Positions 4,061-40,739 are shown, counted from the stretch's first letter. The stretch: 64,000 bases of DNA from Azolla caroliniana (GCA_043228905.1 JBHGNT010000007.1:1240001-1304000); one strand, 5' to 3'. Numbers and translations are program-made. The notes: a model not told the origin generated them from the sequence alone.

Positions 4061-7000
4061 GAGAGAGAGGATGGATGTAAATCAGTTGGTAGGGTTCTCA
4101 TGCAGAGACAAGAACCCCTACATTCCACACAGTTTAATAAATCAATGAAAATTCTAATTGCATGGATAAAAATATGGTTTAACTCTGTGGTACTCCAGAT
4201 ACGATAAAATAAAATGAGAAGGGGGGGAAGAGAATTAGGGGAGATGGTTCATTGGTTTTCTGTGCATGAAATAAATAGATCTCTTCTCAGCGCATATATG
4301 CACAAGAGAGTATATCCATGCTTTCTCGGCACTTCCATTTAGTCTTCAATGTTCTTTGGAAATTTGGGGTTTGTGGCATAATTGAGAACTCCCAGTACAT
4401 CCCATTATTTTATGGTCGGCATGGTATTGCTACTCCTATTCACCAGTTGAAAGACATATGTTTGTTTCCGTTCCTCTGGGCTATTGGCACATACATGCCT
4501 GTTGGTTATTTGGTGGTGCACCACATTTTATACATAAGATATCTGTGGGATATCGTATATGTTGTTAATGAACTTGTGGTTTGTATCTCCATACTTTACA
4601 AAAACATGACACATTTGCAAGTGATAGAGGGATAGATCAATTTTATTATTGTCCTCAGAGGTCAGAAATGACTAATGGAACGAAAGTGACATTTTCACTT
4701 GGTGTGTATTGGAAAGTGACACTCAATTTTCAGGCTAATGAACATTGCAATTGATAGTGCATTGTGGCAACAGAGAATGTTTGCATGGATAGCTCAGATA
4801 CAGAATGAGAGAGATTAGCATCCTGGTGATGCCAAATGTGACCCATGAGAGAGAGTCAGTGGCTGTGTAGTACTTAGTAAAGTTGTGCGTTGGCGACAGG
4901 AAAGTTTCACTTTGTCGTTTCGTAAAATGTAATTATTTGGAAGAGTGAAACCAATTGTACATGTTAATGATAAATGTCTTGTGACTAAGAGAGATATTGG
5001 GGGGGGGGGGGGGGGGGGGGGGGGAAGAGAGAGAGAGAGGAGTGTGTGTGTATGTGTACATTTTATGAAAAAGAGAGTTCTTTTTAGGATGCTATTGGGG
5101 AAACAGATGCGCTTCGAAATTGTGTCAAATGCTTATCCCGTGATATTTCAAAGGAGAGAGAAGAAGCCGTGTCTCTGTTATACGAGCTTTCAAAGTCAAG
5201 ATCATTGTGTGAGAAGATTGTTTCATTGAATGGAGCAATTTTGATGCTTGTGAAAACTGTCAGTAGCTCTTCAGATAATGTCCTTACAGTTCAAAGAGCA
5301 GATGAGACACTAGACAATTTAGAGAAGTGCGATGGAAGTGTGAGACCCATGGCAGAAAATGGGAGATTGCAACCGCTCCTTCAACGTTTAGTGGAAGGTA
5401 TTTCTTTAATATATTGAAGTATGCATTCATGGGGGATTTAATGTATGTTCATGTCATTGAATGTGTATGACTGATGAGTGTTCTTATATTCAATAGCATG
5501 AAAGTTTGTCATGTTATATTGGCTAGTTACACTTGATTAACATCTACTAGACATTGATCTGGCATGAAATCAAGTCTAATCACAAATAGACCAGGAATAC
5601 AACAAATGATTTATAAGTGTGTAGAAAAGCTTGATTATAATTGTGTATTATACAAAGAACAATTTAGAAGGTTTACATATATAGATAGATCTTAACAAAT
5701 GTTAAAATCTAAAGTGGATGAATACTAGTTCATGTTCCTGGCTTCTAAGCAGTTGTCAGTGCTTCTTAAGGTATTATGCTATTAATCTGAGAGAGAGAAC
5801 TACTTATTCAATGTGATGTATTTTATATATATAACTAGTTCACTTATCTTCAAAACACCCTGAACTAGCAAGCTTCCTGGAAAGAGTAGCAAGCTTGATG
5901 CTTTATTATTTTAGAACTAGGTAAAATCCTCCAAAATATCCCTTGTTGAACAAATTACAAGAATACCCCTCTGAGAGTCAAAATGTACCACCACAGAGGG
6001 GATAACATACTCTCTAAGAACTTACTTAGGCAAATATGCTTTTTAAATGGGAATACTTAAGTTGTGCTCTTCTTAATAGGTAGTGAAGATGTACGGTTGG
6101 AGATGGCCATGGTCCTGTCGGAACTTGTTCTTAGCTCGGAAGGCAATACAAAAGTTGCTGAAGTTGGTGGAAAAACCCTTGTAAACATGCTTCAGAATGG
6201 CTCTTCCACTGGGCGAGAAGCAGCATTGAGGTGTTTATGCCAACTTTCTACCCTCGAAAGCAATGGCCATATCTTAGCACAAGCAGGTATTTTGTCTCCT
6301 CTCATACGAGATTTGTATGCGGTTGGGATCAACCAACTTTCCGCAAAATTGAAGGAAATAGCTGCAACAACTTTAGCTAATGTAGTGAACTCTGGTATCG
6401 ACCTCGACAAGCTCCCAATAGATTCCGATGGCAATACGTTACTATCGGAATCTATAATCCATAATCTTCTTCACCTAGTGAGTAACACAGGTCCAGCAAT
6501 AGAAGCAAAACTGCTTCAAGTATTGGTGGGATTGGCATCCTCAAAAGAGGAAGGGGCAGTAAATAAGGTGGTGATGGCGATAAAAAGTGCAGGTGCCACA
6601 ATAACTCTTATTCAATTTCTTGAGGTGCCACAAAAGGATCTACGTGCAAATTCTGTGAAACTATTATATTATCTATCAGCAAATATGGGCCAAGAAATCG
6701 CCGATGGACTTCGCATAACAACAGGCCAACTAGGTACTTTAGTAAAGTTCATAAGTACAAATGGTGTATCAGAAGAGCAAGCTGCTGCCGCAAAGTTATT
6801 AGCAAACCTTCCAAGTCACGATGCTCAGCTCACACGAGCTTTGCTAGAAGAGGGAGCAATTCCCGCCGCAGTAAATAAGCTTGAAGAATTGAAGCAAGGA
6901 GTGGTTAGAATTGGTGCAAGCCGATTTGTCGGTATGTATAAAGAAGGTTTAGTTGGTATCCTCCTCCGGTTTACTGAGATATATGGTAATAGAGATATCG

Positions 7001-7656
7001 TAACATCAGCTCAAGAACACAACCTGACGTCGTTTTTCACAAGCTTGCTTAACATGGGTAACCTTGAGGAAGTGCAGAGGATAAGTGCATTAGCATTGGC
7101 TAATCTTTCGTCTCATACAAAGGATTTATCAGTATTGCCCGAGATTGAAGATAGTAGTAGTAGTCTTTGCTTTTGCTTGTTCAAATCACCACCAAAAAAG
7201 GTAGGATTATGTGTAGTTCATGGTGGACAATGCTCTGCAAAACAAACATTCTGTCTCTATGAAGCAGGTGCGATTGTGCCACTAGTGGGTTGTTTGGACC
7301 ATGGAAATACCAGTCTTGTAGAGGCATCTCTAAAGGCACTTTCTACTCTTCTATTGGAGGTTGAGAATATTGAAGGAGGTATCAAAGTGCTGACCGATGC
7401 TGATGCGATACAACCCATTCTAGATATCATGAAAGAGCACAAGACAGAGCAATTACATCAGTTGGTGGTATTGGTAGTTGAGTGTATGCTCCGGGATGAA
7501 GGCATTGCTCGAATAATCTCGGGCAATCCTAGCGTCCACACCGTGTTAGTAGAAGCATTCAAACATGGCAACCCTCTTACGAAGCAAGCTGCTGAGAAGG
7601 CATTGAAGCATTTGAATAAAATTCCAAATTTTTCAGGTGTATTCAAGCTTAAGTAG
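3441..7656 (+). CDS. PUB43/44: U-box/ARM-repeat E3 ubiquitin ligase, PUB43/PUB44 (SAUL1)-like. Exons 3441-3998, 5088-5397, 6080-7656 (alternative in-frame ATG at 3429)
   Basis: U-box EPPYDSFVCPLTKTIMKDPVSLENGQTYERSAIERWF...CPLTG...LKPSLAIRQTIEEW, followed by ARM repeats. SAUL1-type C-terminus (GLCVVHGGQCS..TFCL; AEKALKHLNKIPNFSGVF). GT-AG junctions keep the frame (NK|DAIGE; VEG|SEDV). Confidence 0.92.
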
Positions 7657-10091
7657 AGTGCTTTTGTTCCCTATCCTTTGTAACCTTTTCAATAAATTGT
7701 GGTAACTTTAGGATTTGATTATTTTGAACATATCACTCTCACACATTTTTATGTAACAAAGATAATCCAGAAAACCATGCATGAGTGGTAACCAAGCACA
7801 GAATGACACCGAGTTAACTATCCATTTTCCTTAGAAAGGAAAGATTCATGTGCAGCAAGTTTCTGATATGATTGAATATCAGGGGCAACAAATTTTTTAA
7901 CATGATGGAAAGTAAATCATAAAATGCTTAAGATTATTCAATCCACTTGTATGGACACTTACCAAACATAAGTCTTGCAAAATGCCTATGGATTATATAC
8001 TTCCAAGGCACACATGGTTTCCCCTCAATGGTCTTGCATATGTTCAATTGACATTGTTTCTTGTTACAAGCCAACTGATGAACATTTTTGAACCTGCAAC
8101 ATTTGCTTAGCACAAGCTGGTTCAACATTGTAGATTTTTGCAATACTTGAATTAGAGATCAGAAAATAAGCTTTAGATAGAGTAGATGAATTCGAATTCT
8201 ACGAGCATTATTCCTATGGATTTATACAATAATATTTCTTAGGGTAATCCTCTGAACGGACATATTATGAAATAATACAAATTCATTTTTGTTAAGTAAC
8301 CGTGATCTTTAGTATGTCAAGGTTTGTTGATGATGATGTCTTTGTTCCATTCTTTTTTTGGTGTTTCATATCTGTTTCTAGAATTGTTGTATGCCAATGA
8401 AAATCTATCCTCTTCCTAAACCTCCAATGCTTTATCTTCATCAAATTAAGATAAAAATCACTCATTCAAGCTTGCAAATTCAACCTTGGGGTGTTTCCTC
8501 CTTGCATCACCATTGACGTGCTCCTACATTTTTGCCGAAAACGTATGCGAGCAGTGACCACGTTGTTGGAGTAGTCACAAACCTTGTCCTTGCATCACCA
8601 AGATAAGTAATTTATTTCTTGAAGAACTTGCATTTTGAGATCTTCGTGTAGAATTGCTTGTCGCGCAATGTTTGTAAAACAAAGCGGACATGTTTACCAT
8701 GTTCTTCTAATGTACGACTATAGACTAGAATATCATCCGAGAAAATAACGACAAAATTTTCAAGTTGTTCTCGGAAAATGTCATTTAGTTCTTGTTGAAA
8801 TGTGGCTAGAGCATTGGTCAAACCAGAAGGCATGAACAAAAACTCATAATGGCCATAGCGCGTGCGAAATGCCATTTTAGGAACATCTTCCTCACTTATA
8901 CGAATTTGATGGTAGCTTGTACGAAGATCAAGTTTCGTAAAATATCGAGCTCCCTAGAGACAATCAATCAAATCGTTAGCCCGGGGCAATGGATATGAAT
9001 TCTTGATCGTCACTGTATTCAAGTGTCGGTAATTAATACACAAACGCCATGTGCCCTCTTTCTTTTTTACCAAGAGAACAAGTGTTGCCCATGGGGATTT
9101 ACTATAACGTATATAAACCATTCGTAAATAGTCCTTGAGTTGCTTAGATACCTCATCCTCTTCAGATCAACTTAAGCGATATAGAGGTATACTTATTAGT
9201 GCTACGCCAAGTACAATATCTATACGATGGTCTATATTACGTTTAGGAGGTAACCCATGTGGTAGTTCACTCGGAAAAACATCACAAAAATCATTTAAGA
9301 TTTCATCGAGTTGTTGTTCAAAATATGATAAATGGCTCGAAACACTATCGATATTATAAACGTGAATGTTCAAATCAGGTACACAATAAAATAAAGAAGA
9401 ACAAGAAAACTCGGATATTGATGGAGAGGAAACAATCGAAAGAGATTGTTTTTTTACCCATTGAATAAAATGAGTACAATCATTTAGTACAAAGGTAATG
9501 GAATGGTGAACCCAATTAATAGATAAAGAACAGTTTTTATTATAAAACCAGGGATAACCTAGTATTACATCAGTGGTACAAAGATTCATTACATTGAAGT
9601 CTACTTCCTCTATATAAGTATCAATAGAAATTCCTAATGAATGAATCACCCCGTTGATGTATTGTACTCTTCCATCAGCCAAGTGCACCTTATAGGTGTG
9701 ATCACTTATGGTGAGTTGGATTCCCCATATCCGAACCAAACAATCATTCACAAAGTTGTGTGAGCTTCCCGAATCAAATAAAAATTGTACTGGAGATCCA
9801 TTGATATACCCATTTGCACGTAGTAAATCATTGGGTGCCAATACATAGTGAGGGAAAGAACATTTACAATTACTTAAATGATGTGCATAGACCTCAAGGA
9901 CATCATGAATTTGACCTTTATGGTCTGCAACTTTGGTTTTGTTGTCGTGCTCTTTTCGTTAGAGCTTTTGACATTACTCTTTTGTATGACCATTCTTTCT
10001 ATAGAACACACAAAAAGGATTTTGTCGCTTACAATCGTGATCCATGAATTCGTTGGGTGTCTTGTGTTTCCCAGTGAATTGCGACTGCTTA

Positions 10092-11843
10092 GTTCAACTC
10101 GGTTTTGAGACCTTTGGCATACATGGACGATTTCACCTCGTTCAAATCGAGGATGAACATTCGACCATCGCTCCGTCCTTTAGCTATGAGTCGGCCATCT
10201 TTCTCGATGAAGCATCCTTCGTTGTTGAAACGAACTTGCATGCCTTGCTCCACAATTTGACTGACCGAGACCAAATTCTTTGTTATTGTGGGCACGTGCA
10301 AGACATTCTTGATGCAAGTTTGCTCACCTTCTTTACCGAATGGCACATTGCCAATGTGCCGAATGGGATGTGTGGTGTCGTCTCCCATCTCTATGAAGCC
10401 GGGTCAATCGGGTGTGCGCAAAACACTAAACCACTCTTCGTGGGATGTCATGTGATGTGAGACACTGGAGTCGACGAACCACACGCCTTCCGAGTTGAGG
10501 TGCTTGTGGAGTCGGAGGCCAACTTAGAGTTCGCTCTATGTCTGTCTCATTACGAATAGTCCACCGTAGTCGTCGTATTTGGAGTTGGTGGCATAGTTTG
10601 TGAGTTGTTGGCTTGTCGAAGCGGACTCACTTCTCTTCTTTCGACACTCTTCTTCGCAGTGGCCGATTTTGCCGCAATAGTTGCAAGTGATAGGCCACGT
10701 TTGCCAACCTTGTTCTGCATGGAAGCTCCCCCCTCTTCCGAAGGTTCCTCAATGGCTTCCGTCTTGTTGTTGAAGGTTTGAGTTCCCTTCGTGTGATGGG
10801 TCGAATCGACCTCTTCTACCACCTTGTCCTCGGCCACCATCCGAATTCGAGAAGAACATTTGTCCTTCCTACGTGTTGCTTTTGATTTAGGCGTGGTTCT
10901 CTTCAACCAATAACATTGATTGACGGTCGAAGAACGAAGGAGGGTTTTCTCTTGCTAATATAACATTCTTAACGAGTCGAATTGTTGTGTGAGGTCGCCC
11001 AAGCATATTTGAACCATCTTGTCTTCGTCGACGTTTACGTTGATGGAGCCAAGCGAGTCGTAAATGCTCTTGATCTTGGCGATGTAGTCCGACACAGACA
11101 TATCTTTTTGCCGAATATTGTTCAACTCTTGTCGAAGTTGAAGCTTTCGGGCAGTCATGTTGGCGGTGAACATCTTCTTCAAGTTCTCCCACCCCTCTTT
11201 AGGTGTCTTGGTGTCTCGAATGTGGCTAAGCATGTGGCCATCGACACATGTTGCCAAGGAATACATTACCCGAATCGCTCCTTGCTCCCACATTGGGTAG
11301 TTGGCGTTTGTGATGTCTGGTTTGTTTTCGAGTGCGTCGGTGATGTAGCTCCAATACCCTTGGCCAACTAGGTATTTGTTCATCTTGTACTCCCAAGATG
11401 AATAATTGCTCCGATCTAGCTTTTCACTAGGGAGCGAGCTACCCATTTGTGTGTTCATGTTGATTGTAGTGTCTTCCTTTTTCGCTTTTCTTCCTTTAGT
11501 CACGTACATGTGCTACGTAGCGGCACTACAATAGTGGATTGCTGGATTTGTCGTCGGCGTCTCGAACACACAATCACAGAGTTTGGTGGGCTTAGTGGAT
11601 TTTCTAAACCACTTGCTCTGATACCATGTTAAGAATTAGGTAATTAACTACGAGTTAATTAGTACCTAATTATGTGATTAAGCTAAGCGAAAGATTAAAT
11701 GATATGTGTGTGTATGTCATAATGTTAACTTCCTCTCTCTCTTCCTCTCATCACATACACACACATATCACTTAATCTTCCGCTTAGCTTAATCACATAA
11801 TTAGGTACTAATTAACCCGTCGTTAATTACCTAATTCTTAACA
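10092..11843 (-). mobile_element. Ty1/copia 5' fragment (element C1) nested in G1 gag
   Basis: Copia gag (EKLDRSNYSSWEYKM...ARKLQLRQELNNIRQ), zinc knuckle, protease and GAG-pre-integrase region (IKNVLHVPTITKNLVSVSQI). PBS TGGTATCAGAGC at 11615-11626. Gypsy gag sequence resumes on both sides. Confidence 0.88.
11627..11843. repeat. 217-bp palindrome in the 5' LTR position of Copia C1 (91-bp arms, ~35-nt loop)
   Basis: TGTTAAGAATTAGGTAATTAAC... / ...GTTAATTACCTAATTCTTAACA. Four mismatches over 91 bp. Abuts the tRNA-Met PBS. Confidence 0.95.
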
Positions 11844-13116
11844 AGTATCATGTTGTATACTAATGACATGTGCCTCGAGAGCACAATGAGATTGTTGAAG
11901 TTCGGAAATCTTGTGCAAGGTAGAATTAAGGAAATTTTGTATTTGGTGAAAATACGACTCAATGGGAATTGGCCCAGGAGAATTTCCTTGAATTCCTTCC
12001 GCTTGGGCAGATGCCATCGGGTCGTTATTATAAGCCATTGAATGATAATTTCTTGCAAAGAAATAGGATAAGGTCAGACAAATAGTCATAACATTATGTG
12101 CAAACATTAATCGATATCATTATCTCCCGTCAATACCCCTCTAGATGTATGAGATGAGGTTCAAGATCAAGTTACTATGGTAACACAAAGGTGTTTTAAT
12201 AACCATGGGGGTGACAAATGAATGTCTTTCCTTGATCTCTATATTGATTTTTTCATGGCGGCTCCCCGAGGTTCAACCATTTATGTTCGCGTCATGAATA
12301 GTTATACATGAAAAAATGTTAACAATAAACATATTTTATAGTCATATGTATCAATAATGTTGTATGGTCTCGGTCATATTTGAACTCCAAACCTCAAGAG
12401 AAAAGCCGTTAAACACTTGAGCTAACCAAATAGGTTGCTCATATTGAATGCTTAATTTTTTTGCGTATAAGACATATCTGAAGACCTTTGCCCATATATG
12501 TTTTTTTAAAAGAAAACATATTTGTCTAGAAACCTTATTTCTCCCTCGTTAACAAGAAAACTATGTTGGTGCGTTACCCAACCTCAAGTCTCATCATTAT
12601 GATGAGATACCCCAAAGTGCAACCCAATGGTCAAGCCACACAAGCTTCGTAGTAGTCCCACGTGACCCATCACATGGTTACATCATAATTTACGAATGCC
12701 TTCCGAAATGATGATCTCATGGTGGCATCGTAACCATGTAACGAGGGAGGGATGTTGGATGTGTGTCATAGGAGCGACCTCACATGATGTGGATCAAGCC
12801 CTAACGTTCACAACATCATTTTGGTTATGACCGTTTCGTTCTAACGTGTAGCAAAATCGAGGTAACCAACGGGTATGACTACAAAAAAAAATTGTTAAAA
12901 AGGGTGGTGACTACGTCATTCTCACAAAAATGTGAGGACGGCCACCAAGATCCTTTCCCCGAAAAGGACAACGTTCGATATTCCAAAATCACATAATAAA
13001 CACTAATATACACATATTTATGTTTATCACATGTATACGATTAAATACGTATACACATGATTACATATGCATATATTAAAGAATCGTAACATAACATAAC
13101 CAATGAATGATGTATC

Positions 13117-14279: not shown

Positions 14280-15460
14280 AGGAAGTCGACATGAAGGAAG
14301 TTTTTGAACCTTACGGATGTATTTGACAACCCTTTTCATGGCCATGATCTCAATGGGAAGTCATACCATCTCAAGAAGTAGGAGGATTTAAGGCATTTGT
14401 TTCTTGACCTAGAAAAACTTTGTAACAAAATGCTTTTTCAAACTCTTTCCAAGTGAACTTAGGGATGCTACCTCCCCATACAGAAGCATGGGTGCCATCA
14501 AAGTGTCAAAAAGGTATTTCTTCCCAACACTTAATTTCTTAATGATTATTGTATGTGTTCTACAATTTGAAGGAAGTTCAAGGCCAAGGTATTTGAATCT
14601 TTCCACATTCAAGAGCCTCATTATTGTACATAATGCATGGATTTTTATTTTTGTTGGGGGAGGGGGGGCTCTTCACAAGCATAATTCTTCCAATGGCCTC
14701 ATAATTCTTTTTTTGACACTCAACTTACTATGGATGTATAATTCTTCTAATGCTCTGATGAATTTTTTTGCACATCTCCTAAAGTATTTCACAAAAGCAC
14801 CACATCATCCACATACATCAAAAGTATGATGACTGCATTCCCAATGCCAACGCTTTCTTTCTTTACGAAGTTGGCAACTATTTGTTCTAATTCATCAATG
14901 CATAGACCAAATAGACTTGGTGACCTTACTTAATACCAATAATGTTATTGAAAAAATCTAAAATTCCATCATCAATGCACACATAACATGTAACCTTCTC
15001 ATAAATTTGGGAAATTGCAAACATATATTCAATTGGCACCCAAGTTCTTCCATTCACTTCCAAAGATGCTCATGAGGTACCATATCAAAAGTTTTCTTGA
15101 AGTCTATGAAGCAACAATATAAACCCTTCTCAAGCAACTTTTTTCCATTAATAGTTGAAGGGTGACAAGATGATCGATGATGTTGTGGTGTTTTCGAAAA
15201 TCAGGTCCATTAGCTCTCTTATCATTATTTTCAACTCATGCACAGTCTAACATTTGATTCCATTATACATCCAAATAGTTGTGTCATTAATGAGCCAACC
15301 ATGATGGTTCAGATGTTGTTTACATTATTTACATATGAACCACCTTTATGTAAAGGTTTGACCCATTTTTTAGTCCAATCGTATGGCGTGCCATGTTGTA
15401 ATGCATGATTAAACATATCACTAATCCATGCATGTGTTTCTTTTCCCGTTGTTGCAAATT
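14280..15460 (-). mobile_element. Decayed LINE reverse-transcriptase fragment
   Basis: Minus strand reads GLYCCFIDFKKTFDMVPHEHLWK (RT motif), plus VERFKYLGLE and LFDTLMAPMLLYG. Many stops and frameshifts. Confidence 0.8.
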
Positions 15461-15720: not shown

Positions 15721-17970
15721 AAAATCATACGTAAGATTATGATTGAACCACATAATTAACCCAAAGTTCATGAAATTATGAATAAATTTTATAGTATTAA
15801 ATCTAAAATTGCTAGATTAAGAAAGAAAGAAATTAGGGATTGCAAGTTTTTGGAGGTTTCTTATTACAACAATGGTAAATTTCAAAAATTAAACATGAAC
15901 TAAGAACCCTAAATTTCATGAAGAAGAAAGAAATTAAACCTTACGACAACAAGTATGTTTCGGAGAAGATGAAGAGGAAGAGGAAGAAAAGAATTAGAGT
16001 GACGAAGCTTCAGGGGGAAATCCTCGAGTTTTGAGACAATACACAAGTTTCGATCCACAACATCAAACATGACAACTTGTACATTCAAAAATGTAGCTAT
16101 GAGATCATGTACAAATTTGTCCTAACGATAACTTGGTCACGATATGGTAAACACCCATTAGGGAGTCACAACATTTGGAACTATGATCCATAATGAGTGA
16201 GATCACCAAAGATTCTTGATATTAATGCAACAACATTAGCCATAATAGAGACAATTCTTATGAGCCATTTGATTTCCTTTCAAGAAACCATAAACAAGCA
16301 AGGTGAAGAGATTAGGGCACTCATGACAGAGGATACAAAACTACAAATTATTGTTATTGAAAATGAGAGTCTTAAGAAAACCGTTGCAAAACTTCAAGAG
16401 GAGATTAGAGAAAGTAAAGTAGTTTCATTAGAAACAAAAAAGTGTTTAAACAAGATTTCACTAAAAGAAGAATTGAATAAGGAAAAAATGGACACAATGC
16501 AGGATGTGAGTGAAATGGAAAATGTATGCACAACAAAGGTCTTAGGTGATGTTTATGGTGGGGATGTATTCTCTAACTCACTTGTTATGTATGTGATGAA
16601 TCCATAAAAGAAGCTCAAAAGTATAGATATCCAAGAATTGAAAGAACATTAATAGATATCAATGAATATTGACATCCGTGAGATTAAAGAGGAGACAGTG
16701 GAAACACCTGCATCCATTACAAAGATTATCAATGACTTCTTTAATGTGCATTATGGTATGTCAGATGTGAATTTCTATAGGGCACATACAGTTGGGAAAC
16801 ATGATGTTGCTTGTTGGGGAGAAAGGCCTATTGTATATAGAATGGCCGATGATACCATGTCAAGCATCATAATTGAAAATAGTTGGGTTTCCTCACAGGT
16901 ATGCTTTGTGAGTCAGGGTTACACTATCTAGCAACAAAATGTTTGTTGTAAAGCATGTGAAGAAAAATTGGAAAATAAATTTAAGGATATGCCCAAAAAT
17001 AGAAACATATGCAAATAATGACAATTCATAGTGAATTTTGTAAAGGAAGAAGGCATTAAAGAAGTTTTCATTAGGAATGTAGTCATCACGTTTTTGTTCT
17101 ATGAAGATGATGTGGTACTTTTTACAAATACTTTAGGAGATGCACAAAAGCATATGAGAGCATTGTAAGACTTTTGCATGCATACAAAGTTGAGTGTCAA
17201 TAGCTCTAAAACAAATATTATACTTGTGAAGAGCCAAAATAAGGATAAATCATGCATTATGTACAATAATGAGCCACTTGAAACAATGGAAAGCTTTCAA
17301 TACCTTGACCTTGAAGCTCTTACAAATTATAGATGGAATGAATGTGCTACTTGCCAACTACAAGCAAGAAAGAGGGCATATTATGAAGTTAAGAACACAT
17401 GCAATCATGAACAAATTAAATGTTGAATACTCAAGAAATACCTTTCTTGACACTAGTGCTTCTCTATGGGGTGGAAGTATGGGTGATAGCATCCCTAATT
17501 CCACTTGGGAAGAGATTGAAAATGTCCAAAAACATTTTCATGCAAAGTTTCTTCGCCTTAAGAAACAAACGCCACACCCGCTCCTATTTCTTGAAATAGG
17601 ATCGCTTCCATTTGACATCATGACCAAGCAAAGGCTTGTCAAATGATGCTTACGGTTCAAAAAAGTCCCTCACAAAGAGTCATGCGAGAAGGACTTAGCA
17701 ACAATATACTCCTCTAGTGTTAATAGGCGTGGAGAGTTGTCATAAGGGAAACTTGCAAGTACAATTTGGAGGGAAGGGAATGAACCTAGCAACTTCCAAA
17801 ACTCACATAGAAAGCAACATAAAGATCCAAAAGCCACATTAAAGCAAAATTTTTTGTTCTAGATGGATGCAAAATATGGAAACATGGTTTTGAAAATGGG
17901 ATGCAACACACTTGTTTCTATGATGCATTAATAGATTGCTCTATAAATGAGGCCTTTTTGCAACACCAAT

Positions 17971-18443
17971 TGTTAAGAGTCTATTACTAATTAATAGACC
18001 AAACTAAAGTAAAAGAAGGAAAATAGAATGGATAGAAGAACCCGTTCCACCCGACCACCCCCGAGCTATGATCTAGACATAGCCAACCTACCACCGACAT
18101 CCTATACCACCGGATATTAGGATGACTAATACCTTGGAAGAGATAAACAAGATCGTCGAGACAAAAGCCTAGCCCGCACCACCAGTGTCTAAGACAACAA
18201 CCTTTCGACGTAATATGATTATGAGGGTAGCTAAGCCTCATATTTATACCTTTTCCTAGGCCCCTTGAATCGATGTGCCTTTCTAAAAGGCTCTCCATTC
18301 ATTGGTTGTCCAAATCATGATAGTGCATGCACTTATCATTCCTTCTATCCAATCATTAGTCCCCTTTTTAACATTAGTGAACATACCCTTCACTAATGTA
18401 GATATTGGTGACCTACCCTCACCAACATTATGTGTACATAACA
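17971..18443 (-). repeat. 3' LTR of G2
   Basis: Direct repeat of 24586-25059; adjacent PPT. Confidence 0.95.
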
Positions 18444-18450
18444 TGCTCCC

Positions 18451-21400
18451 CTACTTCAAAAGATTGCACTCTTGCAATATAAAGTAAGGAAATTGTGCCT
18501 TAAGAGTATGCTCGCGTTCCCATGTGGCATCATCAATAGGTTTATCCATCCATTTGATCTTGAAGAGCTGAATCTCTTTAGAACATAAACGTTTAGTACG
18601 AGAATCAAGAATTCGTTTAGGAACATGAGGTTTGTAAGAAAAATCCTCTAATGTTACAAGATCTTGGATTGTGATGGTGTTATCACCAGAGCCTAAAAAT
18701 GGTTTTAGACGACTAACGTGAAAAACAGGATGAATACCAACGTTACGGGGTAAGGCAAGGTGATAAGCAAATGACCCAACCCGCTTAAGGATTTCAAATG
18801 GGCCACAATATCGTGGGGCTAACTTAGCGCACTTGCCCGTAGACAATGACGTAGAGTCAGTAGGGACACGCAAAAAACCTTTTTGACCAATAGTAAATGC
18901 ACGAGGACGTCTATCCTGATCAGCATAAAATCGAGCACGATCTTGAGCTGTCTTGACATTATCTTTGGCAATATGCAACATTTGGTTCATGTCTTGCAAA
19001 AAATTGTGTGTATTGTCTAATGTATCACGATGAATCGTGACATCAACTGGGGCACGTGGCTGAAAACCATACATCAACATAAAAGGACTATATCCAATGG
19101 GTGTATGTTTAAAGCTATTATAGGCAAATTCTAAGATAGGAAGGTATTGCTCCCACTTAGAAGGGGTTTTTGCTATATAAGCTTGAACCATGTCCTCAAT
19201 AATTTGATTAACTTGTTCAGTTTGTCCATCAGACTGAGGATGATATGCGGAACTCATGCTCAACGTAGTTTCTAGTTTCTTAAAGACTTGAGTCCAAAAG
19301 TCACTAGTAAACTTGGAATCTTGATCACTAACAATATCCATTGGCAATCCATAAAAACGAAATAACTCATCAACAAATTGATAAGACAATTGTTGAGCGG
19401 TTACCGTGGTTTTGGTAGGAATAAATCTAGCCAATTTTGTTAGTCTGTCAACGACAACCCAAATGGCATCATGACCCCTCTGTGTACGACGTAAACTAAC
19501 AATAAAATCCATTAAGATACTTTCCCATTTGTTGTTGGGAATATCTGAGGGAAGTAAAAGACCCGTAGCTTTAAGTCGTTCTGACTTATTAATCTGACAT
19601 TGTAAGCATTGAGTTACGTATTTTTGCACGTCAGAGTGCATCTTAGGCCAGAAAAAGTACTCGAGATGAGAACGAGTGTGCATTGTATTCCAGGATGACC
19701 AGCAAATCGTGCATCATGACATTCATGAAGAATTTTCTGTTTTACGTTTGGTAAATCTAGAACATAGACCTTTCCACTACAGTAGAGCAAACTGTTTGTA
19801 ATGTGAAAGGTCGCCTTCGAGGGTAGAGTGCTAGTATCGACATCTAAACTAGATTCGTTTTTCGTCCAGTATTTCAAAAATTTATTGTCATCAAGGTATT
19901 TCCCTCGAAGGTGATCTAAAAGATCAGATTTTATTTCCCTGAAGCTAAGCATGTTAACTTCTTTAATGCGACTAAGAGCATCCGCAACAGAGTTCATAGA
20001 ACCCTTGCGATACCGTATGGAAAAATCAAAATCTTGCATAAGGTCAGCCCAACGGCCTTTACGACCAACAAGATCTGGCTGGTCACAAAAATACTTCAAT
20101 GATTGATGGTCTGTTGTAACCACAAATTTATTTCCATAGAGATAATGCCTCCATGTTTTAAGTGCATGTATTACCACAAACAACTCTTTCTCTTGAACCG
20201 AATACCAAGATTGAGGAACATCAAGCTTCTTACTTTCAAAAGCAATAGGGTGACCGCCTTGATAAAGAATGGCACCAATAGCATAATCACTAGCATTGGT
20301 TTCGATTGAGAAAGGCTTAGAAGGCTCCGGTAATAGAAGAGTGGGAACCTGACACACATGCTTTTTGAGTGTCTCAAATGATTTGTCAAGTTGTTCATTC
20401 CATGCAATCGGTTTGACAATCTTACATGGATGACCTTTTAAAAGGTCAGTTAATGGAGTAGTCAATTTGGAATAGTTACGAATTGATTTTCGTAAAAATC
20501 CAACAAACCCTAAGAATGATCGCGGTTCACAAATATTATGAGGAATGGGCCAAATTTTAACCTTTTCAATACGAGAAGGTTCAATTTCAACACCATTTTC
20601 CATAATTAAATGACCTAGGTACACAATAGATTTTTGGAAAAAATCACATTTTGAATGTTTTGCATAGAAAGAGTTATAGTCACGCAACTTTTGCAAAACA
20701 AATCAAACATGTTGAACAGGATCTTGTAAGGTACGGCTATATATCAAAATATCATCCAAGAAGACGACAACAAAATCACCAAGTTGATCTCGAAAAATGT
20801 CATTCATCGCTTGTTGGAATGTGGCTAGAGCATTGGTCAACCCGAAAGGCATGACTAAAAACTCATCATGGCCATAGCGCATACGAAAAGCGGTTTTAGG
20901 AATATCATCCTCAGCAATGCGAATCTGATGATAACCTATTCGTAAGTCAATTTTCATAAAATATTGGGCCCCATGCAAACGATCAATCAAATCATCGGCA
21001 CGAGCTAACGGATATGCATTTTTAATTGTCATTTTATTCAAACGGTGATAATTGATACACATTCGCCATGAACCTTCCTTCTTCTTAACTAATAGAACTG
21101 GTGCACCCCAAGGTAATTTACTATACCTAATGTGGCCCATACTCAAGTATTCCTTAAGTTGTTTAGCGATCTCATCCTCTTCTAATCGACTAAGTCGGTA
21201 AGGTGGAATGCTGACAGGAGCAGCACCAGGAATGAGTTCAATTTGATGGTCCACATTACGTTTTGGTGGTAAAGTAAGTGGCAATTCGTTAGGAAACGCG
21301 TCTTGAAAATTGTCTAAAATAGAGTCGAGTAATCGTTGTTCATAATGTGGTAATTGTGTGGCGTCAATATTAAAATAATAAAATTGAAGCGCAGGATCAA

Positions 21401-22820
21401 TTACACACAAATAAATTAATGAACTTGAATACTCGCTTAAAGATTTAGAAGACACAAGTGAACGAGAAGGAAGTTTGGAATATTGAATAAAATGTTTACA
21501 ATTATTAAGTTCAAATGTGATTGAGTGATTAACCCAATCAATGGACAAAGAAGGGTTTTTATTAAAAAACCAAGGGTATCCTAAAATGACATCTGCAGAT
21601 TGTAGTTTCATAACATGAAAGTCAAGCTTCTCCAAATAGGTATCTATTTGAATTGGCAGTTGACAAACAATGCCACTGATGTATTGAACACTTCCATTTG
21701 CCATGTGAACTTGATAGATATGATCACTTGCGTTTATGTGGAGTTCCATTTGCTGCACAAAGTGATCATTAAGAAAATTGTGAGAACTACCGGAATCAAA
21801 CAAGAAATGTGCTTGTATTCCATTGATATACCCGACTGCTCGGAGTAAATCATTAGGTCCAAGTAAATGTGAAGGAAAAGTGCATTCACATGAACTTAAG
21901 TGGTTGGTATGAACTTCAACAACATCAAAAGACTCACATGTGTGACTCATAGATTTGTCTTGAAGAGGGGTGTTCATTGACTTCCTCTCAAGACGATGAC
22001 AGGTATCCTTTGTGTGGCCCCGTTTCTTGCAATATGCACAGAAGAGGTTCGGTTTCTTGGAGTCGTAGTCAAGAGTGTCATTGAATTGCTTACGTTTCCC
22101 AATGAACTTGACATTCGGAGTTTTGGCGAACTCAAATTTATTGTGGTCTTTCTTGGAAGTCCTATGGTATCAAAGTACAATGTTGATTGCTTCCTCAAAA
22201 GTTGTGGGGTCCTTGTCATGGACAATCCAATGGTAATCCCCATTAGGAATACCATTCAAAAATCAAGCAACAAACCATTTCTCACCCGTAAGTCCCGATT
22301 TTTGGATCTGGGTCTGAGCATGATGCACATAATCCTCGAGAGAGGCAAATGGCTTACTCGACAACGTGAGCAAGTGTTGCACTTGTTCAGTTTGAGAAGG
22401 TGGCTACAAAAACTATTTCTTAAAAACATCAATGAAACCTTCCCAAGTTATGGGTAAGTTCTTTGCAGTCCTTAGGCCGCGCCACCAAGCAGCAGCTCGA
22501 CCACCTAACTCACGACCAACGTAACCAATTTTTACAGCATCGGGTTGGGGTGGAGCTCAAAGTGAGACTCCCAACGACCAAGCCAACTGCTAATGGCCTC
22601 CTCGGTTCTTTCTTTCTTATCTCCCTTGAATGGACTCAATAGTCAATTCTTGGAATTTCTTTTCCAATGCCATATTGGCCTACCTCATTTCGACCAATTG
22701 ATTCAAGGTAGTAGTGAGCAATTGCTCAATAGTGATCTCAGCTTGTGTGCGAGATGTGGATTGGAGTTGAGAGGTCTCAGTTGGAGAGATTGCTCCAACA
22801 ACGTTCAAAACTTGTTCCAT
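18451..22820 (-). pseudogene. G2 gag-pol polyprotein, disrupted
   Basis: Gag (GRAAAWWRGL) with knuckle [14 protein letters not shown]; [12 protein letters not shown]; [11 protein letters not shown]; RNase H IETNASDYAIGAIL; integrase WESILMDFIVSL...GPFEIL; chromodomain PKRILDSR...KIKWMDKPIDDATWE. Several stops and frameshifts. Confidence 0.93.
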
Positions 22821-23769
22821 GATGCAAGTTGTGGTTATGCAATATAAATAAGGAGGTTCAGAAAATACACAAGCAAAATGAATGCTTGAAATTTTGATTG
22901 TAAGAACTCACATCTTTACCCCTCTAGACATATGAGATGTGATTCGAGATCCGATAACTATGGTAACACTATGGTGTTTTAAAAACCATGGGGGAAAACA
23001 TAGCTAAGATGTTTTTCTTGAATCTCTATCTTGAATAATCATGGCGGCTCCCCGAGGCTCAACCATGGTTCTAACATCAACGTCGTTTCCTAGTTAGCCT
23101 TATATTAGAATGCCAACCCAACATGTATTGATATGGTCGAGAAAGTGTATTACGTGAAAAAACAAGTGCACTCGCAAGTAATATTTTAGTCTTGCGAGTA
23201 ACAAGCAAATGTTATGACAAAAACGATAAAATAAGGCACTACCCATAAGAATCAAGCAGTGACGAAAACAAGGGTCAAAAAACCCATGTGTTACCTACTA
23301 TAAAAAATGTCACAAATAAATGGATGGTGCGAGGTATGCACATATACATCCCAATATGGTGGTTGTAATTTGCACAATTGTGACATAAGCCACAAATTGA
23401 TACAAGTGGCGGTGGTGTTGTGCGCAAAGATGTACAGAACTCAAATCTATGAGTAAAACATCAATAGGGGAACTCATGTGGTTTTACTCGAGTTCTAAGG
23501 CTCAATAATATGAGTTAAACCTAGATGAGCTGTTGGAAAAAATCGATCAAAAAACGGCATGATGCCCACTCAATATTAAAAAATAGTCTACATGAATCGT
23601 TACACCATTAAACGTACGTAAATAGGGTAGATGAACTTAAAATAAGGGCAAGAAAGAGAGTTAATTGTGGGTGGGAAATGACAATTACTAGAGAATCATA
23701 CAAAAGTGAAATGAAAATTTGTGTAATTAGAAATTAATTAGAATAATAATCAATTAGGTGTATGAATCA

Positions 23770-24340
23770 TTAAGCATGCCTTAAGGTATGTAAGGTAGTC
23801 GACATGCACCTCCTCAAGACCACCACATCTCCCTAGAATCCGCCAATTGATGGCTCAATTAAGCATGCCTTAAGGTATGAAACCCTAAGGTAGTCGACAT
23901 GCACCTCCTCAAGACCACCACATCTCCCTAGAATCCACCAATTGATGGCTCAATAAAGACTAAAGTGGGATTATTAGGTAAGCGACATATACCTCGTTAA
24001 GGCCACAACCTCCCATAGAATCGGCCAAGTGATGGCTCAATAGAGAGTAGAGTGGCATAGGTAGGCGACATACACCTCGTCAAGACCACAATATCCCATA
24101 GAATCAGCCAAGTGAGGGCTCAATAAAGGGAAGAGTGACATACTCAACATCATATGCAAAAGGGCCATGAGGTGAGCGTGTGCGATTAGGGCAAACATGC
24201 TCGACCCAATCCACAACAATAATTAATATCGTAAGAGAAGGCTCAAGAGAGGGGAGAGTGGGAGATACATCACAATATGCAAAAGGGCCATGAGTTGAGC
24301 GTGTGCGATTAGTGCAAACACACTCGACCCAATGCATAAG
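23770..24340. repeat. Tandem repeat array in the G2 5' leader
   Basis: Four ~85-100 bp units (GTCGACATGCACCTCCTCAAGACCAC...TAGAATC.GCCAA.TGATGGCTCAAT). Two further units carry GCAAAAGGGCCATGAG.TGAGCGTGTGCGATTAG.GCAAACA..CTCGACCCAAT. Confidence 0.85.
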
Positions 24341-24585
24341 TAGATTAACATCGTATGATGGTAGAAAGAAAAAAGAAAAGAAACGAAAACGTAATACCAC
24401 TTCCATATGACCAAGAAGAAAGCATCATAGAAAAGAAAAGAGAGATCGAGAAAGAAGAATATCGGGTTAAGAATGTTGTTTTGATCCTGTGACGAGCACG
24501 ACGAGCCTTGTTAGATCCCCATCGCTCACACGCAAAAAACATCAAAACAACAAAAAAAAATTGTTAGTAAATGCTCTGATACCAC

Positions 24586-25059
24586 TGTTAAGAGTCTATT
24601 ACTAATCAATAGACCAAACTAAAGTAAAAGAAGGAAAATAGAATGGATAGAAGAACTCGTTCCACCCGACCACCCCCCCAGCTATGATCTAGACATAGCC
24701 AACCTACCACCAACGTCCCATACCACCGGATATTAGGATGACTAATACCTTGGAAGAGATAAACAAGATCGTCGAGACAAAAGCCTAACCCGCACCACCG
24801 GTGTCCAAGACAACAGCCTTCCGACGTAATGTGATTATGAGGGTAGCTAAGCCTCATATTTATACCTTTTCCTAGGCCCCTTGAATAGATGTGCCTTTCT
24901 AAAAGGCTCTCCATTCATTGGTTGTCCAAATCATGATAGTGCATGCACTTATCATTCCTTCTATCCAATCATTAGTCCCCTTTTTAACATTAGTGAACAT
25001 ACCCTTCACTAATGTAAATATTGGTGCCCTACCCTCACCAACGTTATGTGTACATAACA
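24586..25059 (-). repeat. 5' LTR of G2
   Basis: Direct repeat of 17971-18443; adjacent PBS. Confidence 0.95.
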
Positions 25060-36041: not shown

Positions 36042-39000
36042 CTAGTCATCCAACTCATCTTCATCATTATCTATATTGTCTCCGTGGCATCTAGACACAA
36101 CACTACGGTGTGTGAGAATTCTATCCTCTTCACTACTACTACTTGCGATATCATCACTGAAGGGCGAGAACACATGTTCATCTTCCATTCCAGTTACATG
36201 TTCACCCAATCTGTCTTCCGGACCATGATGGGTTCTTGTCCTATTATACCCTTTCGACCTTAAAGCAGATCTTCTTCCTTGCCTTGCCTTACGCTTTCCC
36301 TTGGGTACTTCTTCTGGAAGTGCCAAGTTAACATCTTTATTACTGTCAGAATGAGGCCAAGTTTCAACACCATCAACCTCTGCTTCTCGAGAAACTCTAG
36401 TATACCTATGATCATCTCCATCATCACCATAAAGGTGATCTGCATTGTCTGACTCTGCACCTACTACTGACTCAGGCCGCCTTCTTTTCCTTCCAAGGTT
36501 TGTCTATTAGAAAAAAGGTTAAAACAAAATGTGCCTTTCAGTTTTTCGCTCAATTCCAACCAGAGGTCATAAGCTGTCTCCACATTATTAATTTACTATT
36601 TTTATACATTGTTTTCTACTTTTTATATGTTGTTTCCTATTATTACATTGTTAGTTTCCTATATTTATACATTGTTTTTTAACTTTTTATATGGTGCTTT
36701 CTTTATACATTAGTTTTCTATTTCATATGTTTTATATTTTCTACCTTAGGTCCTCTGTCAATAAGATGAGACCATGCAGAACGATTACGTAAGCAATCAA
36801 GAACTGCCTGCCGATGACTAGAATAAGCATACCGTTCTCCATTGTGTTTCCTAAGCTTCGACCAATGCTGCAAACGGGATTTTACAGTTAACAACATACT
36901 AAACATATCCTCACAAATAAACAAGAAGGCTGTTAAGGTTGAGAACATACTGGAAGTACTTCCTCGCAAATAAAATCATATGAAACATTATGCCCCTTCT
37001 CATTAAGAATTTCCTCAATGAGACCTACAAAACAAGTTTGTTTTATTGATTTTAGCCAAGAAATCATGTAGTGCACAAATTAGTACACATACAATCCAAT
37101 ATGGAATAAATTCGTACATGCAAATCTAACTCAAGATTGGAGGGTTTTCATTAAAAATACCCGGAAGAGTAAGAATATTTTCAGCTGAGCTTCTTTTATC
37201 TACTTCATTAAGTTCGTTAGTATTGCATGTATCAATATGTGAGAGCCCCTCTGTCGCAGCTCCAGAGGCAGGAGAAGGATGTCTGCCATCAGTTATAGTT
37301 ATTGATGATGATAATTTGTGCGATATGCAGGACTCTATCATATCTTTATCTTTCTTGGTTGCCACATGTAGAACATTGTTACCATCTTGTTTAGCACCAT
37401 CTCCAGAAACTTCATTCTTAGGCATCTGATCATCAATCCCATGAAAAGCATCTCCTTGCAATTCATCTTTATTTTTCCTCCTATATATCTATAAGTAACA
37501 GCATAGTAACTTTCAAATATGTTCAGATAAATTTTAATCAAAAAATCTGAACATGTAGAGAGCAGAATCTAGAAAGAAAAAAATGAGTATCTTTCTTACT
37601 GGTTGATGATCCTTTTGACTCGCATTTGGAGTAACTGGTGAGGATCCAACGCCGGGACGCTTGGAAGAAAATGGATGACCTTGTCTACCCCTAGGCACAC
37701 GACCAACACGAGGAGAGCTATTCAACTCTTGATGAAGCAGCAGTGCTAGCTATAGAAAAGAAATAATGGAAAAGAAAAATATCGGATTATACAAAAGAGC
37801 ATATAAAATAAATGGAAATACCACTCCCTTTTAACCAAATTACCAATAAAGCCTAGCATATCCAAAACATCCCCCATTTTCTCATATTCCCAATCGATTC
37901 CTCTCTGTACAAATTGCCTATGAATCCCTCTGTAGAATTTCTCTCTATCTTTCCCTCTCTAGAATTACTCCCTCCAAGTGGACTTGTTGGGGAGTTTCAG
38001 AAAATGAGGGGAATTTTGGGAATTTGGTGAAACATTAGGGGTATTTCGATAAATTTCCTAAGAATAGATCTACAAACATTTGTTTACCTCTTCATCATTG
38101 AGAGCCGCAGGAGTACCCGATTCTGCCCCCATCACATGCCTATCTGGTGTCCTTGCAAGTATCAAGAATCAGCAGAGTCTTCTAACACTAACAAGGGCTT
38201 CCCATCATCATAAAACAAAATAGCTTAATGCAACGACCCTACTCGCATCCTATCCATACTTTGCTACTTCTCATGAAAATCCATTAAAAACTTCCAAACC
38301 TACATAAAAAGACTTTAAAACATATTCAATACCTTTACCAAGCAACCGATTGTTACTACATAAATCTTTTCCACGTAGTATTTTTTTTACTATTCTATAT
38401 ATTTGGCTGTGGAAGTATAAATCATAGCTGGCCATGAACAAGAAATTTGGCTTACAAAGCAAGTTTAAGATGGGAAAACAATACCAGGGCTCTCAGGTCG
38501 ATTCTCTGATACTATATCCACTTTGGACGGGTTTATTGCGACGACTTTTGAGTCTGTATCAATATCCTCCACAAAATTCTGAATAGTCACATTTCTAGTT
38601 GTTTTTAGATTCTTTGGTGTAGTCCGAGAAGGCTTTATAGACAATCCCAAATCTTCTTGTGTTGCTTTTCTTGCTGATCCATACTGATGATTATAATCAG
38701 TAGTAGGAGTACTATTCTTGGTTCTTTTCTTACTTATAGAATCTTTTCTATTTCCTTCGTCTCTCCGCCGCTTGCTCTGGTAATGAGCTTTACTATTTTC
38801 ATCTTGTTGAAACCTGTGTCTGTGCTTGTACTCCCTTCTTGGCTCAAATTCATTACTTTTTTCCTTGGGTGAATAATACTTCTCTGCCTCCAGGACATAG
38901 TGTGCATCAATTTTTCCAATTTCAGCTTGTTGGCACTCTCCTTTAACTAGATCCAAAGAAGTGTTATCTTTATCTCCTTGTTTCTCTATATATTGTCCGA

Positions 39001-39481
39001 ATAAAAGGCTCACTTTCTGCTCTGACACCTGTGGAAGCTCATTGTAGGTGAATTGAAACACTTTCGGAATATATCCAGTGCATTTCCATAGTTGGCGAGA
39101 GAAAACTGGTGAGACACCAACAAAAAACTCAGGATCCCCACCTGGAATACCTTGCACATGAGCACGTTCTTCTATAGAAAGCTGTTCTCTCCTTAGGGAG
39201 AAAACCTTATCTTCTAATGGAGGGGTTTTGCTTGGTAATTCAACCAGTAGTTGAGCTACCTCGGATTCTTCGGTTTCTTTCTTTTTCTTAAACTTGCACT
39301 TATCACAAACATAGGAAGTGTGACCTTTGAGGATCCGACAACAGCTTGTGTGGACCCATACTCCACATTCATCACAATCAACCATCTCTTCTCCATCATC
39401 AAAACTCACACCACAAGGACAATCCACCGTCCAAGATTCTTCCGATTCTGGACTAGACGGTGGCCGTGCCCGGCCCTTCAT
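36042..39481 (-). CDS. PHD-finger protein (AT1G32810-like), about 7 exons: 39481-38485, 38143-38088, 37749-37600, 37488-37161, ~37024-36951, ~36867-36745, ~36505-36042
   Basis: N-terminal PHD WTVDCPCGVSFDDGEEMVDCDECGVWVHTSCC...CDKC. Conserved ESEVAQLLVELP, LNDEE|LALLLHQELNSSPRV and HWSKLRKHNGERYAYSSHRQAVLDCLRNR blocks are joined by GT-AG introns. Confidence 0.88.
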
Positions 39482-40739
39482 GACCACGAACGTGATATAA
39501 GAAAAAAGAACCCTGCTTGCCACAGAGTGTTGGTGCTCAGGTAGAGAGAACCTAATTTAGACAGAAAAAATAGTTTTATATCATCAATCTTCCTAGCACC
39601 TGTAAAACCCTAATATCCTACATAATGGTTCTGGAATAACGACCATTAAAAGACATTTATATGTATACACATACTTCCTAGCACTTGTAAAGTGCCAAAT
39701 TTCATACCAACTGACATGAAAGAGAGCCAAAATCCTGTATATGCAGCAAGAAGCTTCCTAGTAACAGTAACAAACCCTAATATGAAAGCACAGAACAAGT
39801 TTTCAAGAAAAAAAAACAGTGTGTTTCTTTACTGTATTTTAGCTGAAGGTCTCTATCCAGAGAAAATCATCAGAAAACCTGTCTAACCCTAATTCGGACA
39901 TCTTACTAAATAAAACTGCGAACACCTGTGAGAAAACCTTGATCAGATAACTTGCATAATGAAATCCTAAACCAGAAAACCATTTAAATCCCTAAGTAAG
40001 GACGCTTGTATATAAATCCTGAATCATGAAAACATGTACAAAAAACCCTAAGTTGGAAAATGTTTAAACGAAACCCTGATCAGAAAACTAAATAGCTCCG
40101 ATGTAAACACAAAAATAGGACAACCCGAGTGAAAGCAGAACACTTGTAAAATAAACCCTAATATAAAAAAGAAACGCAGAGAACATTTAAGAAAAAGAGT
40201 TAAGTTTCGTTACCTTATTTTTCAGGTTCAGTGAAGATGTAAACCACTCTTGTACTAAGAGAGAAACGAATGCGAATCCGAGACCAACAGAAATCTGTAA
40301 ATCAGAGAAAATCCTCACAACAAAACAGAGGACAAATCAAAGGCATAAGGGAATAAGAGGTGGAGTAGGAAGAAGAAGAAGAAGAAGAAACAGGGTAGAA
40401 TATCCCTGAAGAAGGAAGGCAAGATTTGGGCAGAGATGAAGAGCTATGGCGCCTCCAACAGTTAGGAGAAAACAAAAACAGAGCAACCCAGAAAAATAAA
40501 ACAGAGAAAGTTTAGAGAATGAAGAAGATAGATGGGAAAGCAAATTGCTCTGTTTTTTCTTTCCTTCATTTGCTTTCTTTGTTATGGATTTTTTTCAACT
40601 TATAGGAAATTGCAAATATACCCCTCCTTCATTTTACAAAGAAGTAATAGAGTATCATATCAAACCCAACCAACCCCTTCTAGCTCTTACCAAGTTACCA
40701 TAGATGGGTAGGTGTTTTTTCATGATTGGAAGTATTCTT

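Follow-up and report, generated by a model that had tools for sequence, protein, structure and literature searches.

A Copia 5' fragment in Azolla caroliniana headed by an R-U5 palindrome, probably derived from snapped-back strong-stop DNA

The 64,000-nucleotide stretch of Azolla caroliniana DNA analysed here (GCA_043228905.1, JBHGNT010000007.1:1240001-1304000; below called the window, with positions counted from its first letter) contains a 1746-bp 5' fragment of a Copia retrotransposon, C1 (10098-11843), which is nested in the gag region of a chromovirus gypsy element and which carries a long palindrome in place of a normal 5' long terminal repeat (LTR). The palindrome occupies 217 bp (11627-11843), has the ends TGTTAAG...CTTAACA, and directly abuts the primer-binding site (PBS) of C1, just as the original prediction, made from the DNA before our analysis, had described it. 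Its arms (11627-11720 and 11750-11843) are 94 nt long and 95% complementary, with 5 mismatches and 29 nt between them, and the earlier figures of 91 bp and 4 mismatches were thus close without being exact. When treated as single-stranded DNA the palindrome folds at -88 kcal/mol (z = -28 relative to shuffled sequences). The remainder of C1 holds the Pfam domains Retrotran_gag_2, DUF4219 and Pol_BBD and then ends at 10098, with the protease, integrase and reverse transcriptase (RT) part, the polypurine tract (PPT) and the 3' LTR all missing; contigs from two public runs have loose ends before 10098, and other copies of the family continue past that point. The parts of the fragment are given below, where R and U5 are the repeat and unique 5' segments of an LTR and L004 is a relative of C1 described in the next paragraph.

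10098-11614, minus strand: remainder of C1, with the leader, a gag of Copia type (10955-11509) and the first part of pol (Pol_BBD, open reading frame 10089-10388), identified by Pfam matches
11615-11626, minus strand: PBS of C1, an exact 12-nt complement of the initiator tRNA-Met 3' end of plants, with no spacer to the hairpin
11627-11720, minus strand: proximal arm, which by its match to the L004 LTR corresponds to the final ~94 nt (R'-U5) of the family LTR and is oriented normally with respect to PBS and gag
11721-11749, minus strand: centre or loop, the R segment immediately preceding the arm (TCATAA..., with a CT-rich run) and collinear with the distal arm
11750-11843, plus strand: distal arm, an R-U5 in inverted orientation that finishes on the outside with the exact complement of the U5 end (on the sense strand of the element, TGTTAAG), with host DNA from 11844

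Relatives of C1 (L001, L002, L004, L005 and L010) were fetched with its gag protein from plant DNA in metagenome assemblies of other samples, and in all five the PBS is preceded by an ordinary LTR of ~270-470 bp; an exact look-up of the C1 gag protein in public assemblies gave no record. These LTRs contain TATA-like boxes, start with TGTTGAGA or TATTGAGA in four of the relatives (L001, L002, L004 and L010), and end in ...TTAACA or a near variant in four (L002, L004, L005 and L010). In the 445-bp LTR of L004, positions 303-445 form one collinear block with the plus strand of the window at 11709-11843, which comprises the centre and the distal arm, whereas the proximal arm (11717-11627) is matched by positions 349-445 only, at 85.6%; over these last positions both arms of C1 match the L004 LTR at about 85%. 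L010 and L002 repeat this polarity, making three relatives in which the distal unit is the longer one, with the centre included, and the PBS-proximal unit the shorter, and the match of the C1 arms to the last ~95 nt of the LTRs in L004, L002, L005 and L010 ranges from 76 to 86%. We found no counterpart of the U3 (unique 3') segment, which is represented by positions 1-302 of the L004 LTR and includes the TATA-like boxes, anywhere in the 64-kb window. To judge from these alignments the arms of C1 are the R-U5 end of the ordinary LTR of its family. Read along the sense strand, the 5' end of C1 therefore runs from an inverted R-U5 with its upstream part, through a shorter direct R'-U5, to the PBS. 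The two R-U5 copies overlap by ~9 nt at 11709-11717 in a TG/CA microhomology, and the centre is inverted relative to PBS and gag and presents its GA-rich run on the sense strand of the element. C1 has no U3 at its 5' end and has lost its 3' end, and the pair of direct U3-R-U5 LTRs is absent from it.

The two arms of C1 are no longer exact copies of each other. The innermost mismatch (11718/11752) falls in a pre-existing imperfect stem, outside the copied sequence, while of the other four, three are C>T in the proximal arm when compared with the relatives and one, in the distal arm, is a transversion. Four differences over ~82 copied positions give a divergence of ~5%, which fits arms that were identical at birth and decayed afterwards, and at 1.3e-8 per site per year, a commonly used plant rate, would correspond to an age of very roughly 2 million years. 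We agree with the earlier reader of this DNA that such mismatches speak against a fold-back artefact of sequencing. Our read evidence consists of Logan contigs from four public runs and three organisms, and none of the listed pieces bridges the junction between arm and centre; these contigs are short, the exact C1 locus was not confirmed in independent reads, and chimeric long reads can give palindromes. Even so, we regard an artefact of assembly or sequencing as very improbable, in that the arms differ at five positions with the three C>T changes on one arm, the centre is asymmetric, the boundaries lie exactly at the PBS and the U5 terminus, and a second case in the same window sits within a target-site duplication.

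This second case is C2, which together with C1 makes up the whole set of Copia elements in the window. C2 lies on the minus strand at 46789-52020 and is complete, with gag, integrase and RT, its domains occurring in the order rve then RVT_2 on that strand (integrase before RT, the Copia type). The features that matter here are:

46789-47004, minus strand: ordinary 3' LTR of C2, 216 bp, after a PPT ending in ...GGGAGAT
51806-51817, minus strand: PBS of C2, with a 1-nt spacer to the hairpin
51819-52020, minus strand: hairpin of C2, TG..CA, 202 bp, its arms of 92 nt differing by 7 mismatches and its centre 20 nt long

A perfect 5-bp target-site duplication, GATAA, surrounds the whole of C2 (46784-46788 and 52021-52025), from which it follows that hairpin and element came in one integration event, and this argues for a single integration of a chimeric cDNA. 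The 3' LTR of C2 is not palindromic and is the normal LTR of its family, with homologues in L011 and L013: the PPT and LTR start are 91% identical to L011, and the LTR ends have homologues in L013. The four relatives of C2 in other samples in which a PBS was present likewise have ordinary LTRs and no palindrome. We detected no similarity between the C1 and C2 palindromes, and the two differ little in the summed length of arm and centre (123 nt in C1, 112 nt in C2), which we ascribe to similar R-U5 lengths. The original prediction thus held in stating that the two palindromes are unrelated in sequence and that both Copia 5' ends in the window are hairpins while the gypsy LTRs, of ~390 bp, are ordinary. 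Neither C1 nor C2 is a canonical member of its family, two direct LTRs being absent from both, and they are better described as aberrant copies.

Further features of C2 and its relatives deserve mention in their own right. The centre of the C2 hairpin (51910-51929) looks like a patchwork in which TTAGGATC recurs in the left arm (~51861) and CTACCACCTTTCTG in the right arm (~51990), which hints at more than one template switch during its formation. The integrase region of C2 contains a 191-bp tandem duplication (49138-49519, 95% identical), and a second integrase fragment matches at 83% amino-acid identity. The C2 relative L011, a 6.8-kb contig, has two PBS sites (4303 and 5551) with differing LTR ends and leaders, both coming after a complete 1373-aa polyprotein, and is a nested or collapsed assembly of two subfamilies.

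The GATAA duplication also bears on a purely chromosomal explanation, in which two copies of a family, or one copy and a solo LTR, came to lie head to head and a central deletion then joined U5-R to R-U5-PBS. We consider this unlikely. In C2 the duplication brackets the element from the hairpin's outer end to the 3' LTR (chance probability about 1/1024), the proximal arm of C2 is unlike the 3' LTR of the same element, which is unexpected for a normal element truncated by deletion, and a rare pair followed by a nearly symmetrical deletion would be required twice in 64 kb and in unrelated families. In its favour, the family of C1 is very abundant and nesting is common, the junction lies in microhomology, the ~5% difference between the arms is within the range found between family copies, and it also accounts for the inversion of the centre and for an outer end that coincides exactly with the U5 terminus.

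The ordinary LTRs of the relatives bear in turn on whether the palindrome could be a regular structure. The original prediction had proposed a shared property of Copia lineages or of cDNA processing in this genome, and it is the second of these that gains support, from the R-U5 arms, the absence of U3 and the polarity of the centre. A lineage property is opposed by the ordinary LTRs in all five C1 and all four C2 relatives and by the normal family LTR at the 3' end of C2 itself; in fact, no inverted repeat of at least 20 nt was found in the LTR and PBS regions of L001, L002, L004, L005, L010, L008, L011, L012 or L013. A related possibility is that the palindrome is a regular LTR with long terminal inverted repeats, present at both ends of a subfamily that propagates in this genome, possibly non-autonomous and perhaps founded by one fold-back event. 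The same palindrome at both ends of a full-length copy was not found among the relatives fetched, all five C1 relatives being of the ordinary kind, and a palindrome without U3 and TATA boxes, together with a C2 3' LTR that differs from the palindrome, makes such a subfamily quite unlikely. The very high summed contig depth of arms and centre, seen in four runs from three organisms, would be in keeping with it, yet such depth would arise in any case, since the sequences of arm and centre form part of every normal LTR of the family. A contig joint from 11844 to 10362, with 12 letters between, was considered as a PPT followed by a palindromic 3' LTR and set aside, an antisense copy nested in the pol gene of another copy being the simpler reading.

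Taken together, these observations lead us to think it rather probable that C1 is a dead-on-arrival insertion of Copia type that derives from an aberrant cDNA, one in which the minus-strand strong-stop DNA had snapped back on itself. Its palindrome is most likely a relic of faulty reverse transcription and not an element of a new kind. While the anatomy of C1 is read directly from the DNA, the steps of cDNA formation and insertion are deduced from that anatomy. In the sequence of events that we envisage, initiator tRNA-Met at the PBS would prime minus-strand strong-stop DNA, copying U5 and R, and the 3' end of this strand would then snap back on a short TGTGT/ACACA complementarity in R. Self-copying would proceed to the strand's own 5' end and on into the tRNA, which would regenerate a plus-sense PBS. 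In this scheme the distal arm of C1 would represent the strong-stop strand and the proximal arm its snap-back copy. The resulting hairpin, rc(U5-R)-loop-R'-U5-PBS (rc, reverse complement), would replace plus-strand strong-stop DNA at the second strand transfer and anneal to a complete minus strand for which the second packaged RNA had served as template. The product would be a linear DNA without U3 at its left end, with the hairpin on the left, a normal LTR on the right, and a U5-type ...TTAACA-3' at both ends that integrase could use. This DNA would have inserted into the chromovirus gag region, after which the 3' part of C1 and ~500 bp of host DNA would have been deleted and the arms would have diverged by ~5%.

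Several details of C1 are those expected from such a course. An inverted centre and a longer distal unit are expected if the strand made first was the minus strand growing outward from the PBS, and because a strong-stop strand starts at the primer junction, its outer end is expected to complement the U5 terminus, as it does where host DNA adjoins at 11843/11844. One base in eight separates TGTTGAGA, with which a normal U3 begins, from TGTTAAGA, which is complementary to the U5 end, and integrase would therefore hardly tell the two apart. The earlier description of the unit as having two U5-type att ends is a fair one. We also count in favour of a snap-back origin the ordinary LTRs without palindromes in the relatives, and C2, an unrelated Copia element with the same layout, a perfect target-site duplication and a normal 3' LTR, as well as the precedent of strong-stop self-priming in HIV-1 (PMC4668388). 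The TATA-like motif TATAATATA is found in L004 at 1653-1661, with the fold-back point 35 nt downstream, and its AATATA core is common to L002, L005 and L010; given this spacing the 5' end of the RNA could lie near the fold-back point, which would be compatible with a complete strong-stop DNA. Since it lacks U3, C1 has no promoter of its own and should not propagate, although a read-through transcript of its hairpin could give rise to small RNAs against the family leader.

A number of points weigh against a snapped-back origin. At the fold-back point the natural stem has little stability (-3.3 kcal/mol in L004, z = -0.5); this TG/CA stem does occur in the best fold of L004, but it does no better than shuffled sequences, and we regard it as microhomology only. 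The arms of C2 share only the last ~25 nt with its own 3' LTR, and a second, heterologous RNA must therefore be invoked as the donor of the hairpin. This donor was sought among the relatives and not found, the match of the C2 arms to the relatives and to the 3' LTR extending over the last 25-35 nt only; such arms can be accounted for if the strong-stop DNA came from another RNA, packaged alongside and carrying the same PBS. In C1 the loss of the 3' end leaves neither a target-site duplication nor an asymmetry of LTRs to be read, and the short contigs of so high-copy a family neither confirm the C1 locus independently nor count fold-back junctions. Finally, the distal arm is followed by a PBS-like AGTATCA with a 1-nt offset, which clean joining by integrase does not predict.

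This last point calls for a closer look at the host DNA on the two sides of C1, which belongs to a gypsy element designated G1 and comprises the following:

8597-10097, minus strand: protease and RT part of the host chromovirus gypsy G1, left of C1 (RVT_1, RVP_2), with tblastx and blastn matches to the intact gypsy of the window at 20613-22121
11844-12282, minus strand: gag-side part of G1, right of C1, of which 12124-12282 matches the intact gypsy at 22907-23068

On the left, 8597-10093 is homologous to the intact gypsy at 17971-24980. On the right, no alignment of 11844-12123 with that element was obtained, the two being too diverged, and the comparison available is with a gypsy contig from another, related organism, which aligns from exactly 11844 to 12069 before continuing into unlike sequence. 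This alignment supports the earlier statement that host sequence resumes directly after the final CA of the C1 palindrome. The coordinates further indicate that ~500 bp of G1 are missing between the two flanks, from which we conclude that a single deletion probably removed the 3' part of C1 together with this adjoining host DNA. As for AGTATCA (11844-11850, the 7 bases past the distal arm), it resembles the start of the PBS, GGTATCA, at an offset of 1 nt, and the palindrome seems to overrun the U5 end slightly. Since the alignment with the contig of the other organism reaches as far as 11844, AGTATCA probably belongs to the host, its likeness to the PBS being due to chance or to microhomology used in the joining.

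The same junction bears on an improbable variant of our proposal, to which we give little credence, in which the same snapped-back cDNA, possibly already incomplete (hairpin, gag and pol start), was end-joined at a chromosome break instead of being inserted by integrase. C1 is just 1.75 kb long and ~500 bp of host gypsy are missing between its flanks, and GTATCA past the distal arm might be a remnant of primer-derived sequence or microhomology with it. One later deletion would account for the truncation equally well, the gypsy contig that reaches 11844 makes a primer remnant less plausible, and the clean 5-bp duplication around C2 is typical of integrase.

The original prediction had also raised the possibility of an independent, MITE-like (miniature inverted-repeat transposable element) unit moved by integrase, on account of its two U5-type ends. 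That the hairpin, with its TG..CA ends, is such a unit and is found at Copia 5' ends by chance we find scarcely credible. No stand-alone copy of either hairpin exists in the 64-kb window, the sequence is simply the R-U5 of the family itself, a unit without U3 has no evident promoter, and a double-stranded source is not evident without reverse transcription of the whole element. Other inverted repeats do occur in the window. The one at 40983-41385 (116-nt arms, 94%, 171-nt spacer) was considered as a third case and rejected, since a PBS is lacking and the sequence bears no relation to the hairpins of C1 and C2; possibly it is a MITE-like element. Between the two gypsy elements, paired inverted repeats of ~140 nt (14713-14851 and 17064-17200, 77-80% identical) lie ~2.3 kb apart and may belong to a DNA transposon with terminal inverted repeats.

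The window is plant DNA and also codes for PPR, ARM-repeat and PHD proteins. The 12-nt PBS complementary to initiator tRNA-Met (TGGTATCAGAGC) has three exact matches in the 64 kb, at 11615, 24573 and 51806 and all on the minus strand, against 0.22 expected by chance; the one at 24573 is part of the intact gypsy, whose LTRs are the ordinary ~390-bp ones mentioned above. The relevant features are:

6064-7656: ARM/HEAT-repeat protein, host-gene-like open reading frame between transposons
17971-24980: apparently intact chromovirus gypsy, with protease, RT, RNase H, integrase and chromodomain
38465-39523: PHD-finger protein, host-gene-like open reading frame between transposons
57234-58913: PPR protein, host-gene-like open reading frame between transposons

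The LTRs of the intact gypsy are 96.5% identical, and its PBS is of the same initiator-tRNA-Met type as those of the Copia elements. With a PBS common to both superfamilies, strong-stop products could anneal to one another's minus strands.

That both Copia elements of a single window have this layout suggests that the event is not rare in this genome. A broader reading, which we put forward tentatively and think on balance doubtful, is that in this plant lineage snapped-back strong-stop DNA regularly takes the place of its plus-strand counterpart, the resulting cDNAs having two U5 ends and being competent for integration, so that a sizeable share of the retained Copia insertions would be promoter-less and hairpin-headed. 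On this broader reading, and as C2 suggests, another co-packaged RNA can supply the hairpin, recombination between LTRs would be unable to remove such copies, and they could silence their own families as sources of hairpin RNA. If the snap-back origin is right, C1 and C2 would be chromosomal fossils of a side reaction known mainly from test-tube work on retroviruses, the by-product would be able to complete replication, integrase would accept two U5 ends in vivo, and, from C2, RNAs of different subfamilies would be able to meet in one particle. In practical terms, hairpin-headed copies escape or mislead programs that search for LTR pairs and cannot be dated by LTR divergence, for which the divergence between arms is a possible substitute, and a perfect inverted repeat of a family leader is a plausible trigger of small-RNA silencing. 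The importance of the finding rests mainly on its recurrence (two of the two Copia elements in the window) and on the mixed-template implication of C2.

Literature searches, incomplete in coverage, yielded no account of an integrated LTR retrotransposon with an R-U5 palindrome in place of its 5' LTR; fold-back defective DNA has been a subject of older work on retroviruses. Several known systems are similar in part. The LTRs of maize Sireviruses, which are also Copia elements, contain a palindrome-rich region with the capacity for hairpin formation and a possible part in silencing by small RNAs (Bousios et al. 2016, PMC4728375). Those palindromes are short, multiple, conserved in the family and located in the cis-regulatory U3 of both LTRs, whereas in C1 and C2 a single palindrome, made of R-U5 in C1 and probably in C2 as well, replaces U3, at the 5' end only, and is absent from the relatives. 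Self-priming LTR retrotransposons of the Tf1 type, which have been discussed for fungal Copia elements (PMC5445492), share with C1 and C2 a fold-back beside the PBS. In the Tf1 type, however, folding of the RNA 5' end onto the PBS substitutes for the tRNA primer and is the regular mode of replication, whereas C1 and C2 have a standard PBS for initiator tRNA-Met and would owe their hairpins to an abnormal fold-back of DNA. The 5' inversions of LINE-1 elements produced by twin priming are likewise accidents of reverse transcription that leave an inverted 5' segment within one target-site duplication. They differ from C1 and C2 in concerning a target-primed, non-LTR element with no tRNA primer or LTR, and in being inversions rather than palindromic duplications. 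Mu killer of maize, an inverted duplication of part of MuDR, silences its family through a hairpin RNA, and like C1 it is a natural inverted duplication of the 5' part of a transposon with a possible hairpin RNA against active copies; it arose, however, through a DNA rearrangement of a DNA transposon. A further parallel is found in HIV-1, where self-priming of minus-strand strong-stop DNA is an established in vitro side reaction that is suppressed by nucleocapsid protein (PMC4668388, citing Guo et al. 1997). As proposed for C1, the 3' end of the HIV-1 strand folds on an R hairpin and copies itself into an R-U5 palindrome that ends at the primer junction, the stem being a TAR-like hairpin in HIV-1 and a weak TG/CA microhomology in C1. 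The underlying biochemical reaction is already known, and what sets C1 apart is its outcome, since in retroviruses the self-primed product is treated as a dead-end by-product, whereas that of C1 appears to have completed the second strand transfer and to have been inserted into a plant chromosome.

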